Shown here one piece after another: positions 2,726 through 60,134 of a stretch of 64,000 nucleotides of DNA. Both the position numbers and the translations under genes were made by a program. Each line of letters starts with the position of its first letter. Within the stretch, counting starts at the first letter, position 1. The notes under the pieces are model-generated. The model worked only from the letters and a program-made list of their open reading frames with translations, did no database searches and was not told where the DNA came from. Location: the sequence record PV037725.1; one strand, 5' to 3'.

Positions 2726-4882
2726 TTAACGGAGCCATGCAGGCACCATTGGTTTAACGGGTTCTTGAACCACGAAGTTGTTAAAGTCGATTGGGATATC
2801 ATAAGCTTCGAACGCTCTGGTTAATGCACTATGCAAGATACGGTTCTCATCAAAGTATTCAACCTTAAAGTCTTCAGCTGCCACATTAGTGAAAACGTCA
2901 CCCTCGACAACCGGTGCAGTTACACCAGTAATCTCAGCAACCTGTTGGGTAGACCAGGCTAAGATGTCAGCACTACGGGTTGAGATATTTGGAATCTCGC
3001 CAGTATCAAGCGTACACTGATAGACATAGGTTTGTGAATCTTGACCCAGTCGATAGATACGTGAGATAGCCTGTTCCAGAATGTAAGCCCGGAATGGAGA
3101 GTTCAACAAGATCATGGTGTCAGCAATAGTTAACCGTACACCAGTCGACAGTGAGGCGTAAGTCGCAATCAAAGGGTTAAGTTGTTTGTCATTGTCGAAG
3201 CGCTTGACATGGTTAGCCAGGTCATTAGTGTTCTTACCGTAGACGACTAGGGGTTTCATACCCAACTTGATTACCTGAGCTTCAGCGGCATCGACGGCCT
3301 CAACGAAACTGGTAAACATGATTGTCTTCTTGAGCGTAGACTCAGTGATACCCACCCAGTCGATATATGGAATCATGGCCACGTGAGCCTCAATTCGCAT
3401 ACCGCCAACAATACGACCTAACGTTTCACCTTGGATCTTGAGGTTGACGTACTTAACAACTGACTTAACATCACGGAACTGCTTGATCATGGTCTGTGGC
3501 AATAGCTTCTCAAAGACATTCTTCTCGAAGGCGTTAGCTCGTTTCATTTCGTCACCTAAGTAACGAGGATCAGGGGTTCGTGAGATTAAATGTACGAGGT
3601 GCAAGTACTCATCGAATTCAATACGTGCCTGACGGTCCTTGAGGCCACTACGAGCGATCTTAATGCATTCCTCCCAGAACCGCATGTCTTGATCACGACG
3701 CTTCTGGTAATAGGCTGTACGCTCTTTAATGAAGGCTTCCATTACTTTACGAATAGCTGGAAGGGTGAAGCGTTCGCCATCTGGAATCTTGATTGGGTAA
3801 GGTCGCATGATTGGTGGCAGTAGTTCATCAGAGATCTCAGACTTCTCAATCTTGTAACTTACCAACCCCAAGCGGTGCCGAATAATGTCAAGACCCTTAG
3901 AGGCTTCTTTACCGTAGATCTTCTTAAAGATAGCTTCCACGTTCGGTGTGAACAATGGATCGACTACACGCAGTAGAGTAATGATCTCTGCGCCCAGTGC
4001 TTTGACGGGTGTACCGGAACCTTGAATGTTGTTTTCTGAACCAAGGAACTTCACCAGACTTTGATACAACATCGACCTCGCTGAGTTAGGGTCGTTCATG
4101 TTGTGGGATTCGTCAAGGATCGTAGTGACCTTCTTACCTTGATAGATAGTCGGATCTTCCAGTAGCTCCTGTAACTTGTTCATCGCGTCGTAGTGACAGA
4201 TAATCCAACGTTGCCCGGTATAGGCCATTGGTGATCCAGTGTGCCAGATCGATTGAGGGGTTTTGAACATCTCATTAACCGACTCGACCCAAACCGTTTC
4301 AAGTACCGACTTAGGACAGAATACAACAATGAGTTCAGAACCCAGCATCTCGGCAATAGCCGACATCATGTAAGTCTTACCAGAACCTGGGGCACCCGCG
4401 ATCAAGTCACCTTTTAGACCATACTGATCCAAGCGATAGCTATAGTTCTTGAAGTACTCCATCTGGTAAGGTTTAACAGTGAGGTTCATGTTAGACAGTT
4501 TACGGAAGTCCAATCGACCTACAACCGATGCGGTATCAGGTGGAATGGTATTCTTCAACCATGTCTTTTCCATCATCCCTTCAATGATGCCATTGATAGC
4601 ACGAATGCTCGTCCAACGGTGACGGTAGTTCTTGATGTTCTCAAGGATGTAAGTAATCTCAGGAGCAAAGAACTTATAGAAGCTAAATGACCCACCACTC
4701 ACGGTGTTGAAGATGTTCTGTGAGATCCGTGTAGTCTTCCAATACTTATCCATGTCTCGGACAATGTCTTTGGCTCGAATACCAGATACCACGATCTCAG
4801 TGCTAGTCTCCTTAATAGTGACTCCACCGAACAGTGTTCTGAATTGATCAATCATGTTGGTTGCTCTTGAGTTAATAATCAT
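2726..4882 (-). CDS. SF2 (SNF2/DEAD-like) helicase
   Basis: Walker A GAPGSGKT, Walker B LDESH, SGTP, motif V STGVRLT, motif VI QAISRIYRLGQ; start may be a few codons downstream. Confidence 0.9.
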   Translation of the reverse strand: MIINSRATNMIDQFRTLFGGVTIKETSTEIVVSGIRAKDIVRDMDKYWKTTRISQNIFNTVSGGSFSFYKFFAPEITYILENIKNYRHRWTSIRAINGIIEGMMEKTWLKNTIPPDTASVVGRLDFRKLSNMNLTVKPYQMEYFKNYSYRLDQYGLKGDLIAGAPGSGKTYMMSAIAEMLGSELIVVFCPKSVLETVWVESVNEMFKTPQSIWHTGSPMAYTGQRWIICHYDAMNKLQELLEDPTIYQGKKVTTILDESHNMNDPNSARSMLYQSLVKFLGSENNIQGSGTPVKALGAEIITLLRVVDPLFTPNVEAIFKKIYGKEASKGLDIIRHRLGLVSYKIEKSEISDELLPPIMRPYPIKIPDGERFTLPAIRKVMEAFIKERTAYYQKRRDQDMRFWEECIKIARSGLKDRQARIEFDEYLHLVHLISRTPDPRYLGDEMKRANAFEKNVFEKLLPQTMIKQFRDVKSVVKYVNLKIQGETLGRIVGGMRIEAHVAMIPYIDWVGITESTLKKTIMFTSFVEAVDAAEAQVIKLGMKPLVVYGKNTNDLANHVKRFDNDKQLNPLIATYASLSTGVRLTIADTMILLNSPFRAYILEQAISRIYRLGQDSQTYVYQCTLDTGEIPNISTRSADILAWSTQQVAEITGVTAPVVEGDVFTNVAAEDFKVEYFDENRILHSALTRAFEAYDIPIDFNNFVVQEPVKPMVPAWLR

Positions 4883-5014: not shown

Positions 5015-5052
5015 ATTAGAACTCCTTTAGGGAGTATATTACACTGGTGAAT
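5015..5052 (+). promoter_or_regulatory. early promoter
   Basis: ATTAGAA-N4-TTT-N6-TATATTAC-N4-GTGAAT. Confidence 0.85.
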
Positions 5053-5082: not shown

Positions 5083-5445
5083 ATGGAATTGAAAATCAAA
5101 CAGTTACGTGAAGACACGACTGTAGCGATATTCACCTGGCTGTCTAACCAAGTAGGTCAGACTGACATCGTGATGGATCGTGAGCACTTTGATAATCCAT
5201 TGAAGGATTACATCACATTCACGAACCCCCGTACAAAACGGGTAGTTAAGCTGCGGGCCAAGACGTACCATTATTTGGTGCACTTCATGGACCACACTAA
5301 TGAGAACGGTTATTTCCACTTGGAACTGGACTATGGTCGCCCAGTATCGGAAGCGGCTGAGATCATCCTGAAATACCTCACGAGTGATCTTCAACCCGCA
5401 CCATTTAAAGAATGGGTTAAAGCACTCATTTCAACGATGGACTAA
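5083..5445 (+). CDS. hypothetical protein
   Basis: GAGGA RBS before ATG 5083; flanked by promoter and terminator. Confidence 0.8.
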   Translation: MELKIKQLREDTTVAIFTWLSNQVGQTDIVMDREHFDNPLKDYITFTNPRTKRVVKLRAKTYHYLVHFMDHTNENGYFHLELDYGRPVSEAAEIILKYLTSDLQPAPFKEWVKALISTMD

Positions 5446-5451
5446 TAGCGC

Positions 5452-5490
5452 GCTCCCTTCGGGGAGCAGCCTACTTATTTCTTTTTTTAC
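5452..5490 (+). terminator. intrinsic terminator
   Basis: GCTCCC-TTCG-GGGAGC followed by T-rich run. Confidence 0.8.
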
Positions 5491-5515
5491 AAAGATATAC
5501 TCTTAGCATGATATT

Positions 5516-5692
5516 ATAGTCATGAAGGCAGTCCGTGCAAATACGCACTGCATACGAGGGGGTGATCCAGCCATAGGTGACCTGGTACGTAAAAGCATCG
5601 GCGAGAGCTAACGCGAGTACCTAACTACGAGCCTTGTGACTATCGTCAACACTAATCTAGTTGACGGGTATCTGGCCTCCCTTCGGGGAGGC
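5516..5692 (+). ncRNA. candidate structured non-coding RNA
   Basis: 13-bp closing helix 5516-5529/5631-5643, internal hairpins, hairpin 5644-5666, terminator 5675-5692; no credible plus-strand ORF. Confidence 0.5.
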
Positions 5693-5698
5693 TTTATG
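5675..5698 (+). terminator. intrinsic terminator
   Basis: GCCTCCC-TTCG-GGGAGGC-TTTATG. Confidence 0.85.
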
Positions 5699-5703
5699 CC
5701 GTA

Positions 5704-5728
5704 ATTATACTTGGGTGGATATGTTGTG
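5704..5728 (+). promoter_or_regulatory. candidate second-class (middle-type) promoter
   Basis: TACT-N5-GGATAT-N4-TG, matches 9664 and 14013. Confidence 0.45.
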
Positions 5729-5763
5729 TAGGTAATGTTGCCTACGCTAATAGAGTAATCAAA

Positions 5764-6489
5764 ATGAATGATGTTACTACAATCAATGACCAAGCTCTGG
5801 CTTTGATACAAGTAGCGTTAGATCCGGCTAACGTACCGTTCTTCGCTACCAATACACCTGAATATTACATGCAACATCGCACCGCAGGGTTTACAGTCCC
5901 AGATAAAATGGTTGACTATACCCTGTTCAGAGACGTTCTTACCGATCAAGATTGTGTTGCGCGCATTATCGTACCCAACATTGACGGCTGGGCTATAATG
6001 CGGGATACGTTCAATCATGAGTTGGGTCAAGTATCTAAATTCCGAGTGCATAATAGTGAAGGGCATGTGATTGATGCGTATACCCATGGAAGTAAACCAC
6101 ATCTAAAGTTAGCTAAGACTTTAGGTATTGATCCTAATCATAAAGACATAATCAAGTTATCACCCATTACTTTTATGGTAGAGGGAGTGACTAAAGAAAC
6201 ACCTCGCGGCTTTAGCTTCGAGGGTCAGGCTGAACGTAATGGTTTCGTAGTAAAGCAACTGATGGCTAAATATCTAGGTAAAGTAGAGATGTTTAATCAT
6301 ATCGCACACTCGATCGAACATGATCGAGAAGCCATCCCATTATTGAGGAAGACTGACGAACGTGTCCCACTTGATCTAGTGGTGATCTACGAAGCGCGTA
6401 GGTTCTTTGATCGTGTACGACGTAACAAGTTCTATACATGGCTGGCTACCCAGGCACATTCCAAAACCACAGTCATCCTGATCAACTAA
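5764..6489 (+). CDS. hypothetical protein
   Basis: 241 aa ORF ending at terminator. Confidence 0.8.
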   Translation: MNDVTTINDQALALIQVALDPANVPFFATNTPEYYMQHRTAGFTVPDKMVDYTLFRDVLTDQDCVARIIVPNIDGWAIMRDTFNHELGQVSKFRVHNSEGHVIDAYTHGSKPHLKLAKTLGIDPNHKDIIKLSPITFMVEGVTKETPRGFSFEGQAERNGFVVKQLMAKYLGKVEMFNHIAHSIEHDREAIPLLRKTDERVPLDLVVIYEARRFFDRVRRNKFYTWLATQAHSKTTVILIN

Positions 6490-6525: not shown

Positions 6526-6563
6526 AATACAAATAAATTCAAATTTATATTACTACTGTGAAT
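6526..6563 (+). promoter_or_regulatory. early promoter
   Basis: AATACAA-N13-TATATTAC-TACT-GTGAAT. Confidence 0.85.
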
Positions 6564-35958: not shown

Positions 35959-36297
35959 ATGTCCGAAACATCTTTGTATGGTAAAATCACATCTCACGTT
36001 GGTGGTCCATGGGTTCTACATTTGGTCGATGATCAACTGAATGGTAATGTTTCTATCCGTGAGATCAATGCCTTTCTAGCTGAACTGAGTCCAGAGGAGG
36101 CTACAACCTTCTGGAATCAGTATCCTAACCTTGGTGAACAACTGGCCGTAATCCAGCGCGTAGTGATTATCAACAACGCTGACTTCACTGATGCAAAAAC
36201 TACATTGACCGTCAGTGCAAAAGAATATGCCTTCGGTGAAGAATGTTTGCATCGTATCCACCGTTTGGTCTTCAATAAAGAATACGAGGGCGAATAA
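35959..36297 (+). CDS. hypothetical protein
   Basis: GAGG RBS; coupled to thyA. Confidence 0.75.
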   Translation: MSETSLYGKITSHVGGPWVLHLVDDQLNGNVSIREINAFLAELSPEEATTFWNQYPNLGEQLAVIQRVVIINNADFTDAKTTLTVSAKEYAFGEECLHRIHRLVFNKEYEGE

Positions 36298-37679
36298 TGC
36301 ATCAGTATCTACATACCGTCGATATCGTTAAGCGCTTTGGTGTACACAAAGGTGACCGTACTGGCACTGGTACCCAGAGTCGGTTTGGTCATCAGGCACG
36401 TTACAGCCTGCGCAATAACCAACTCCCAGTAGTGACCACCAAGAAGGTTCACCTAGCATCTGTAATCCATGAGCTGTTCTGGATGCTGTCGGGTTCTACA
36501 CGTGTAGATTACCTTATCGAGAACGGCGTACGGATCTGGAACGAATGGGTTAAACCCGAGACTGCGGTGTATCGGCAGCTTACTCTGGATGAACAAACCT
36601 TAGCTGTAAAGAAAAAGATTGGTGGTGGATATGTATTTAACCATCACAATAACCCAGCGCAACGCGGTGCCCAGATTGTTCCTATTAACGAACATCTGAA
36701 AACACTCACCCCTGATGAGGTAGTTAACTTTAAGTCTAACTGCTTGATCGTTAACGCCGATACCCAATATGTGGTATATGCCAACGTTCTCGACTGGGGT
36801 AAGGTTTGGAGTAAATATAACTCTAACGGTAATGACTTTGATGACTCCGTCATTTATACCCTTTATGAACTGTTGATCGGTGAAGCCACCAAGTTGGTAG
36901 GAGGTGATCTGGGAGCCGTCTATGGTAAGACATGGCGTGATCTTGAGGACACTCGAGTAATCCGTAAACAAGAGTGGGCTGACTACGAGAAGCGTAAGTT
37001 TGATTTCGTGGTTGACATCCCTGGCAGCAGCATGGAAACCGATCGTTGCGTAGTAACTCGACGCATTGACCAGATCCAAGACATCATCGATCAACTCAAG
37101 AACAATCCTGACTCCCGTCGGATAATTGTTTGCGCTTGGGCTCCACAATTGGTTGATGAACAAGCTCTCCCACCATGCCATAGCTTCTTCCAGTTCTGGA
37201 CTCGTGAACTGGCACGCCAAGAACGCGAAGATTGGCTGGAGTCAAATCGACCTGAAGATTACGAACTTTATCTTAGTGGTCTAGCATGGACTGAGTACTC
37301 GGAAAAAGATCGAATTGAATCGCTTGACGAACAGAATGTTCCACGACGTACCATCAGTTGCCAGCTCTACCAGCGTTCAACTGATACATTCCTCGGTTTG
37401 CCATTCAACATCATGTTCTACAGTTTGCTGACTCACATGTTGGCTAATCAACTGAACATGGTTGCAGATGAGTTTATCTGGACTGGTGGCGATACCCACG
37501 TTTACAGTAACCACCAAGAGCAGACTACTCTTCAATTGACCCGTGAGCCAAAGGTACTCCCTACTATCCGCTTCGCACCAGAAGCCAAAGGTAAGGATAT
37601 CCGTGATATTGGTATCACAGACTTCACTATTGAAGACTACGAGTACCATCCACATATCGCGGGTAAGGTAGCCGTATGA
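36297..37679 (+). CDS. thyA: thymidylate synthase with two large insertions
   Basis: DRTGTGT, TTKKV, IWNEW, GDLG.VYG, PDSRR, ALPPCH, YQRS.D.FLGLPFN, GGDTHVYSNH. Confidence 0.97.
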   Translation: MHQYLHTVDIVKRFGVHKGDRTGTGTQSRFGHQARYSLRNNQLPVVTTKKVHLASVIHELFWMLSGSTRVDYLIENGVRIWNEWVKPETAVYRQLTLDEQTLAVKKKIGGGYVFNHHNNPAQRGAQIVPINEHLKTLTPDEVVNFKSNCLIVNADTQYVVYANVLDWGKVWSKYNSNGNDFDDSVIYTLYELLIGEATKLVGGDLGAVYGKTWRDLEDTRVIRKQEWADYEKRKFDFVVDIPGSSMETDRCVVTRRIDQIQDIIDQLKNNPDSRRIIVCAWAPQLVDEQALPPCHSFFQFWTRELARQEREDWLESNRPEDYELYLSGLAWTEYSEKDRIESLDEQNVPRRTISCQLYQRSTDTFLGLPFNIMFYSLLTHMLANQLNMVADEFIWTGGDTHVYSNHQEQTTLQLTREPKVLPTIRFAPEAKGKDIRDIGITDFTIEDYEYHPHIAGKVAV

Positions 37680-59885: not shown

Positions 59886-60134
59886 ATGGATCTGTTGTCG
59901 TTTATATTTTTCTTGATGTTGGCAAGCTGCATCTTCCTAATTGGTTTGGGTATAATCTGGGAGATTCGCGGTATCTTAGAACCCTATCCAGTTGGGGTAT
60001 TCTTGCGTGAGCAATATGGCACGCTGGGTACGACGATGTTCATCACGATGGCAGTGTCGGCTATATTACTGGTGCTACATATCACTAACGTTATTACCAT
60101 GTGGGAGGTGGGGTATGCGCTCGCCAAGTTATGA
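59886..60134 (+). CDS. small membrane protein
   Basis: two hydrophobic helices; GGAGGA RBS. Confidence 0.7.
   Translation: MDLLSFIFFLMLASCIFLIGLGIIWEIRGILEPYPVGVFLREQYGTLGTTMFITMAVSAILLVLHITNVITMWEVGYALAKL

Follow-up and report, generated by a model that had tools for sequence, protein, structure and literature searches.

A putative structured small RNA of phiKZ-like jumbo phages carries a long complement of the Pseudomonas 16S rRNA 3′ end

The genome of Viktualia (PV037725.1; 322,655 bp), a phiKZ-like jumbo phage of Pseudomonas syringae, appears to encode, in an intergenic gap near its start, a member of a new and widely conserved family of structured RNAs of phiKZ-like jumbo phages. The stretch analyzed here, referred to as the window, is the first 64 kb of this genome; the predicted RNA, of about 180 nucleotides (nt), runs from 5519 to 5699 on the + strand, to which all coordinates below refer unless stated otherwise. 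Its most constrained feature is a block of 17–19 nt (5556–5572 in Viktualia) complementary to the 3′ end of Pseudomonas 16S ribosomal RNA (rRNA), the tail on which messenger RNAs (mRNAs) dock, and this provides a concrete, easily testable handle on its role. One interpretation, put forward tentatively and at somewhat less than an even chance, is that a dedicated phage RNA pairs with the host 16S 3′ end (the anti-Shine-Dalgarno sequence, possibly also invading helix 45) and may control the mRNA-docking site by shutting down, re-prioritizing or tethering the 30S subunit.

Structure, transcription signals and distribution of the putative RNA

The gap containing the RNA is 318 nt long (5446–5763) and separates two open reading frames (ORFs), 5083–5445 and 5764–6489. 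A first-pass annotation had singled it out, at roughly 310 nt, as lacking a credible ORF, and had proposed that it holds a structured non-coding RNA with a transcript of its own; both proposals are supported, given a conserved promoter motif, a strong terminator, the absence of a conserved ORF, covariation of the helices and a core identity of 97.6% with the corresponding region of phage 201phi2-1. This identity stands out from its surroundings: in a megablast search against phage genomes the intergenic region 5440–5787 aligns to 201phi2-1 and the flanking genes do not, with the core (5519–5643) at 97.6% and the flanking coding regions and helicase gene at 53%, 64% and 74%.

A covariance model of the core has 22 matches, 20 of them distinct, with E-values from 1e-12 to 1e-26. 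Copies occur in at least five genera (Phikzvirus, Serwervirus, Miltoncavirus, Pawinskivirus and Phabiovirus) and in uncultured jumbo-phage contigs. The core is found in PhiPA3, PS119XW and its relatives, HPP-Temi, D6, Phabio and RVTF4, and in phiKZ, where it lies between gp203 and gp204 (AF399011.1, 212,850–212,977); the phiKZ copy recurs at an identity of at least 97.6% across 47 genome records of phiKZ-like phages, and the phiKZ-like records listed carry no annotation of the RNA. Among uncultured viruses it is present in two 238-kb IMG/VR contigs (L179, L188), in two metagenome contigs (L261, L313) and in nine further IMG/VR jumbo-phage contigs (seven new ones, the PA7 genome and a duplicate of contig L378).

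In the covariance model the core is a three-way junction of helix P1, hairpin P2 and a P4-P5 arm with a GNRA cap. P1, the closing helix that the first-pass annotation had placed at 5516–5529/5631–5643, pairs 5519–5528 with 5632–5640 around a small internal loop (5523–5524/5636), and shows compensatory changes in relatives: depending on lineage, the partner sequences read GUC/GAC, GAC/GUC, GC/GC or CAGGCA/UGCCUG. P2 (5529–5550), recognized earlier as a hairpin at 5530–5549, has an inner stem (5535–5538/5545–5548) and outer pairs (5529–5530/5549–5550), and its stem likewise covaries (GUGC/GCAC, GCGC/GCGC, UGCG/CGCA, CAAUG/CAUUG). The P4-P4b-P5 arm (5584–5621) consists of P4 (5584–5588/5617–5621), P4b (5595–5596/5613–5614) and P5 (5600–5602/5607–5609), with compensatory changes at each of the five pairs of P4 and of P5; the GC-GAGA-GC element noticed at the outset is the conserved P5 with its GAGA tetraloop (5603–5606), in which G5605 and A5606 are invariant. 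All three of the alternative helices proposed within the core can be found in the sequence, with different fates: GGTAC/GTACC is P4 and is conserved, whereas CCAG/CTGG and TAGGT/ACCTA are not, the latter pairing occurring only in Viktualia and 201phi2-1, and these two are probably not part of the structure. Junction J4/1 (5622–5630; UAACUACGA) reads AACUACG in most copies, and its CUACGG complements the 5′ strand of 16S helix 45, a statistically weak similarity. Beyond the core, the expected hairpin CGTCAAC/GTTGACG is present as P6 (5644–5666; stem 5644–5650/5660–5666), whose sequence is variable: Viktualia and 201phi2-1 differ by two double compensatory changes, and other homologs hold differing hairpins at this place.

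Covariation was assessed on the 20 distinct homologs aligned to the model; since this alignment was fitted to the model's structure, it leans towards that structure. Standard pairs make up 81.5% of the pair cells, as against 30–46% when the partners are slid by 1–3 columns, and compensatory changes occur in 16 of the 23 pairs, a level of covariation reached by none of 500 shuffles. The structure exceeds chance, and the covariation check suggested by the first-pass annotation thus comes out in its favor; folding energy alone is mildly unusual (z = −2.2).

The class to which the RNA might belong had been left wide, as a small RNA, a ribozyme or a ligand-binding RNA. The first of these is supported, and nothing tested points to a ribozyme or a ligand sensor. 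No Rfam 15 covariance model matched anywhere in the window at its gathering score, and a permissive scan of 5400–5800 (E up to 10) gave four chance-level hits, none of them ydaO; ARAGORN gave no transfer RNA (tRNA) or transfer-messenger RNA match. The suspected likeness to the ydaO riboswitch (RF00379) accordingly falls away: it comes down to a few short words, one of which, GGGGTGATCC, belongs to the 16S-complementary block, and the phage RNA differs from ydaO in architecture and in not lying in the 5′ untranslated region (UTR) of a regulated gene.

That the region instead encodes a small protein is the least probable of the explanations considered, and hardly probable at all. The GenBank record of Viktualia does list a hypothetical protein of 29 codons at 5522–5611 (+), inside the RNA core, and the first-pass annotation had named translation of an antisense ORF, 5608–5811, as a result that would explain the region otherwise. 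Neither ORF is conserved, and both coding readings were rejected: an earlier stop truncates the 29-codon frame in 201phi2-1, and PhiPA3, PS119XW and phiKZ lack it; the homologs have no ORF of at least 15 codons in common on either strand, and the substitutions track base pairing rather than codons. The annotated coding sequence (CDS) at 5522–5611 is probably a spurious gene call.

The transcription signals fit a unit of its own. Middle promoters of phiKZ carry the motif AAanTTACc centered near −24, and its late promoters TATG, with the G at +1 (PMC4666361). In Viktualia a promoter of the phiKZ middle class can be recognized at 5492–5519, with AAnn(T/A)TAC ending at 5500, a 14-nt spacer and TATAG at 5515–5519, and the same arrangement stands directly 5′ of P1 in nearly all homologs; the spacer is 14 nt in eight of the first ten copies and 12–16 nt in the others, and one copy has GAC for TAC. 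Because motif and spacing precede P1 in nearly every homolog, the RNA probably has its own middle-class promoter, with a start at or near G5519. A scan for sigma-70 promoters and generic terminators missed these phage-type signals and returned only chance-level sigma-70 sites; phiKZ-like phages do not use the host polymerase.

At the other end, the UUCG terminator of the first-pass annotation (5674–5693) is an intrinsic terminator at 5674–5699 (stem 5674–5681/5686–5693, UUCG loop, then UUUAUGC), and a GC-rich hairpin followed by UUUAUG closes every homolog. In 201phi2-1 an RNA 3′ end has been mapped by ONT-cappable-seq at 229,201, and the terminator with this 3′ end was stronger in vivo than lambda T0 when tested with a reporter (PMC11512511); the mapped end aligns immediately after GGCUUUAUGC, on the + strand, at the homologous terminator hairpin. 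The 5′ end of the predicted RNA is taken from the promoter motif and its 3′ end from this mapped 201phi2-1 end.

Both flanks are separately equipped. Upstream, a first terminator had been suspected and is present: the UUCG hairpin at 5452–5467 (stem 5452–5457/5462–5467, identical in 201phi2-1) and its T-rich run, together 5452–5488, would serve the preceding gene. Downstream, the promoter-like motif noticed near 5704 is a middle-type promoter for the next gene (5703–5731; AATTATAC, 14 nt, GTGTAG), also found in 201phi2-1; it matches the AAnnTAC-N14-TGTAG pattern, which it shares with the RNA element's own promoter. With a promoter and terminator of its own, and a next gene that has a separate promoter, the element is bracketed as its own unit, and the region 5519 to about 5699 looks like an independent small-RNA transcription unit.

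Genomic context points the same way. The RNA usually adjoins an SNF2 helicase gene (in Viktualia the phiKZ gp203 homolog, at 2726–4882 on the opposite strand), and the two are divergent in most phages; of the 12 new uncultured loci, 10 have the helicase gene on the other strand at a distance of 60–900 nt. In PhiPA3 (contig L003, 2994–3228) the RNA gene is upstream of the helicase on the same strand, and a local inversion appears to have kept the two adjacent. In contigs L179 and L188 it lies between opposite-strand genes with no helicase nearby. These two loci (L179 8965–9000, L188 7172–7210) also resemble phiKZ in their signals, with a terminator made of a hairpin plus UUUAUG and, downstream, a TTTATTAC motif; their neighboring proteins have no match in isolated phages.

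This variety bears on the possibility that the element works in cis, as a 5′ leader whose premature termination yields the RNA and which controls read-through into the genes downstream as an attenuator or riboswitch-like device would, with the 16S-complementary block serving as a ribosome standby or loading site. Short 5′UTR transcripts from premature termination are numerous in phiKZ and 201phi2-1 (PMC10914365, PMC11512511), and the PhiPA3 arrangement, upstream of the helicase on the same strand, is what a leader would show. Such a leader is nevertheless unlikely: the downstream genes have their own promoters, neighbors and orientation vary (mostly divergent from the helicase, between opposite-strand genes in L179), the 201phi2-1 counterpart of the terminator is very strong in vivo, no Rfam riboswitch matches, and about 190 nt and two hairpins separate the block from the next start codon.

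The block complementary to the 16S rRNA 3′ end

The block at 5556–5572, which includes GGGGTGATCC, is the reverse complement of the Pseudomonas 16S 3′ end (...GCGGCUGGAUCACCUCCUUA) and can pair with 16S nt 1525–1541 (E. coli numbering). The Pseudomonas end was confirmed by an exact-pattern scan of genome contigs, among whose matches are P. avellanae and P. viridiflava (both of the P. syringae group) as well as P. putida and P. fluorescens; numbering follows the rrsH end of E. coli. The complement spans the anti-Shine-Dalgarno sequence, the rest of the free tail and 5–6 nt of the 3′ strand of helix 45. Viktualia has 17 contiguous pairs, from nt 1541 to 1525, two of them G·U; in PhiPA3 and D6 the complement extends over 18 nt, starting from the terminal A1542, and in PS119XW, HPP-Temi and phiKZ over 19 nt, also from A1542.

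The conservation of this block is extreme. It contributes 12 of the 22 invariant columns of the RNA; the rest lie in the TATAG start region, within P1 and at the two final bases of the GNRA loop. The sequence AGG[G/A]GGUGAUCCA is invariant in all 20 distinct copies, and positions 5557–5569 do not vary except for A or G at 5560. What variation there is in the complement affects three sites, with A or G opposite U1541, A or G opposite U1537 and C or U opposite G1526, and in 19 of the 20 distinct copies every variant at these sites keeps its pairing through G·U wobble; Phabio alone loses the helix-45 part of the complement (the last three pairs). All four combinations at the sites facing U1537 and G1526 occur, so these sites have changed repeatedly.

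The block lies in the long junction between P2 and P4, where no conserved helix covers it, and neither the consensus structure nor the homolog alignment gives it a conserved intramolecular partner. Folds of single sequences pair it weakly and differently in each phage, with a predicted opening cost of 4–8 kcal/mol. The predicted duplex with the free 13–14 nt tail is worth −21 to −24 kcal/mol, of which −14.5 to −19 kcal/mol is left once the opening cost is deducted; for comparison, predicted 16S pairing of the ribosome-binding sites of 103 window ORFs has a median of −5.9 and a best value of −10.9 kcal/mol. Since a block of 17–19 nt outside all conserved helices complements the 16S 3′ end, the RNA probably docks on ribosomes.

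No 16S-tail complement in the window is longer. The second longest, at 36899–36912 (+; 14 nt, AGGAGGUGAUCUGG, with several G·U pairs), is inside ORF 36297–37679, where it encodes GGDLG, and is a chance match at background level.

That the block is the working ribosome-binding site of an mRNA was ruled out: no AUG, GUG or UUG stands at initiation distance (4–12 nt downstream of the block) in any homolog, and the homologs share no ORF.

A second question is whether the strand has been read correctly. If the opposite-strand RNA were the functional one, it would be a mimic of the 16S 3′ tail, soaking up Shine-Dalgarno sequences or tail-binding proteins. Folding energy is indifferent on this point (the + strand is the more stable in 10 of 20 copies), and G·U and A·C counts are equal on the model alignment. 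The + strand carries the promoter motif and the terminator's U-tract, however, and fits the 3′ end mapped in 201phi2-1; on the opposite strand, about half of the copies would have CCCCC in place of CCUCC and so mismatch GGAGG, while their + strand GGGGG can still pair with CCUCC. Promoter, terminator and wobble pattern are the grounds for assigning the RNA to the + strand, and a functional opposite-strand RNA seems very improbable.

More weight attaches to another alternative, doubtful as it is: the RNA is structured and trans-acting, its block has some other partner (a phage or host protein, or an RNA resembling the 16S tail), and the 16S match is a by-product, for instance of descent from inverted ribosomal DNA (rDNA). 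Part of the complement faces the paired helix 45, and the invariant GNRA loop and J4/1 suggest contacts beyond the block. There is also a hint of rDNA origin in some copies: in PS119XW, HPP-Temi and D6 the 3′ part of the RNA (CUACGG..CCUUG..ACGACU) is weakly colinear with the reverse complement of 16S 1493–1514, the best hit falling where it would be expected. The colinear 3′ similarity is near chance overall, in 201phi2-1 and PhiPA3 as in Viktualia, from which the colinear arrangement itself is absent, and for this reason it is kept as a hint of origin only. Against another partner speak also the register of the pairing, which reaches the terminal rRNA nucleotide, the restriction of changes to wobble-compatible ones, and the absence from the 64-kb window of any 16S-tail-like target for the block.

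Proposed function and comparison with known systems

The phiKZ-like phages are the main model of nucleus-forming jumbo phages as well as candidates for phage therapy, and the RNA may bear on how they give their own mRNAs priority on host ribosomes. The favored reading, with about an even chance, is that the RNA acts in trans, hybridizing to the 16S 3′ tail of the 30S subunit as a “super Shine-Dalgarno” without a start codon. Under this model, a stable, non-translated RNA of about 180 nt would be made in the middle phase from its own middle-class promoter and ended by a strong intrinsic terminator; its P2-P4 junction would be left unpaired, exposing the 17–19 nt complement. The RNA would reach the cytoplasm and hybridize to the 16S tail of 30S subunits, so that their mRNA-docking site would be occupied by a very tight Shine-Dalgarno mimic. 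In the simplest case the consequence would be titration of 30S subunits (a decoy or sponge), leading to shifted competition among mRNAs or to damped initiation at a particular stage; alternatively, docking might serve some other end by tethering a structured scaffold, GNRA-tipped arm included, to the ribosome platform.

The geometry of the subunit would accommodate most of this pairing. The Shine-Dalgarno helix of the 30S platform is formed by nucleotides from about 1531 to 1542 of 16S rRNA, which are single-stranded, so that at least 12–13 pairs would be possible without disturbing the subunit; the further 5–6 pairs would need the 3′ strand of helix 45 to open.

Several points weigh against an action on the 30S subunit. 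Nucleotides 1524–1530 are normally paired in helix 45, so the last 5–6 complementary bases may be unusable on the mature 30S. The phage's own genes use Shine-Dalgarno sites, and a global sponge would therefore be costly to the phage too. The chance that three variable sites would fall on the nine wobble-tolerant of the 17 positions is about 0.12, and the wobble pattern therefore adds only modest statistical support. The known hosts are all Pseudomonas, with one and the same 16S tail. A search of the helicase-gene flanks of the chimalliviruses SA002, Goslar, Ea35-70, RTH11, DT01 and EL, whose hosts include Salmonella, E. coli, Erwinia and Xanthomonas (EL and DT01 infect Pseudomonas), found neither a copy of the RNA nor a long 16S complement. 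Finally, the RNA is not mentioned in the text of the phiKZ Grad-seq, dRNA-seq and ONT-cappable-seq papers.

The literature searched holds no description of the RNA: the texts of the phiKZ and 201phi2-1 transcriptome studies, an antisense-oligomer screen, a transposon screen and a 2026 jumbo-phage review mention neither the locus nor any rRNA complementarity. Small RNAs have been reported from these same phages, namely sRNA005, upstream of a tail gene, and fragments of 5′UTRs and 3′UTRs (PMC11512511, PMC10914365, PMC8545117). They resemble the present RNA in coupling a promoter to a nearby terminator and in their conservation across genera; the locus beside the SNF2 helicase gp203 is a different one, absent from the text of those papers, and no rRNA complementarity is reported there. 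The RNA may, however, be one of three intergenic small RNAs tabulated for 201phi2-1 (Table S4 of PMC11512511).

The closest parallel to the block itself is mRNA Shine-Dalgarno pairing, including extended Shine-Dalgarno motifs (e.g., PMC13009471), with which it shares the 16S 3′ tail as partner, a GGAGG/GGGGG-UGAUC core and, as predicted from the consensus structure, presentation in unpaired form. The phage block differs in its length (17–19 nt as against 4–9), in a predicted strength about 10 kcal/mol beyond that of any ribosome-binding site in the window, and in its setting: with neither start codon nor ORF behind it, it occupies a junction within a compact, structured RNA that has a terminator of its own.

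In its proposed logic the phage RNA is closer to the decoy RNAs, of which 6S RNA is a decoy for RNA polymerase and CsrB, RsmY and RsmZ are decoys for CsrA/RsmA: in each case an abundant, stable, non-coding ligand mimic titrates a central machine. Here the proposed target is an rRNA, reached by Watson-Crick pairing, and not a protein, and there is no relation in sequence or structure (no Rfam match). A tRNA-Val fragment of Haloferax is ribosome-associated and competes with mRNA on the small subunit, as is proposed for the phage RNA, which differs in being virus-encoded from a dedicated gene and in its long, explicit complementarity to the rRNA 3′ end. Among viral structured RNAs that expose a complement of small-subunit rRNA, the 3′ cap-independent elements of the barley yellow dwarf virus (BYDV) type and loop IIId of the hepatitis C virus (HCV) internal ribosome entry site are complementary to 18S rRNA over 3–6 nt and act in cis on the viral mRNA; the phage RNA would be a separate non-coding transcript, with 17–19 nt. 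Phage-encoded bS21, a protein of other phages, has been proposed to act at the same site, the anti-Shine-Dalgarno region of the 30S (PMC9723584).

A small RNA running from promoter to terminator is thus of a known kind, and its presumed target, the 16S 3′ end, is without a described counterpart in the literature searched, where no phage or bacterial regulatory RNA is described with that target. If the proposal is correct, this would be the first regulatory RNA of a phage to target rRNA, kept throughout the phiKZ-like nucleus-forming Pseudomonas phages; rRNA would become a new class of target in the small-RNA biology of bacteria and phages, and the RNA might offer synthetic biology a compact natural “ribosome sponge”. 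If it does not bind the 30S, it would still represent a new conserved structured RNA family, deserving annotation in place of the probably spurious 29-codon CDS. Experimental access is favorable, in that the RNA is present in phiKZ, for which gradient sequencing, antisense-oligomer knock-down and phage engineering are established.

Neighboring signals and related sequences elsewhere

The small gene upstream of the RNA, ORF 5083–5445, is of the early class and has its early promoter, TATATTAC, at 5035. The same core occurs, also upstream of small genes, at 6546, 46756, 52630, 53375 and 53660 (+), and most copies have TTAGAA and a T-rich stretch 5′ of it; a copy at 60062 is without this upstream context and may be a chance match. 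Downstream of the RNA, the promoter of the gene corresponding to 5764–6489 is of the early TATATTAC type in D6, RVTF4, Phabio and phiKZ and of the middle type in Viktualia and 201phi2-1. The leader of this gene (within 5703–5745, +) contains a hairpin, GTAGG-TAATGTTG-CCTAC, after the promoter, and both promoter and hairpin are also found in 201phi2-1.

Pattern searches for further homologs returned a varied background. The single match of a first IMG/VR scan, contig L009, was a false positive in a GC-rich coding region. A broad 16-mer scan of IMG/VR yielded mostly coding GGDP codons and ordinary extended ribosome-binding sites, L179 and L188 being the only true homologs. The one metagenome scan was saturated with 16S genes, which took up 86 of the 120 hits, and yielded only two homologs.

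Some of the other sequences recovered have features of their own. In five unrelated viral contigs of IMG/VR (L134, L173, L211, L218, L225) the 16-mer AGGAGGTGATCCAGCC stands directly before an ATG, apparently as a natural extended Shine-Dalgarno sequence of 16 nt on a protein-coding gene. Two more families of viral contigs (L151, L156, L159, L206 and L250; L163, L171 and L172) have AGGAGGTGATCCAGCC in apparently non-coding stretches where no start codon directly follows; these may be other RNAs targeting the 16S tail, or unusual leaders. The IMG/VR contig L238 carries two inverted copies of an E. coli-type 16S 3′ end together with the beginning of the spacer, at about 8905 (−) and 10478 (+), each joined to unrelated sequence right after CCAACC. 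Finally, the metagenome contigs L294, L317 and L332 hold 16S rRNA genes with insertions of 30–50 nt in the helix-45 region; the insertion resembles the search pattern in spacing, which is why these contigs were recovered.

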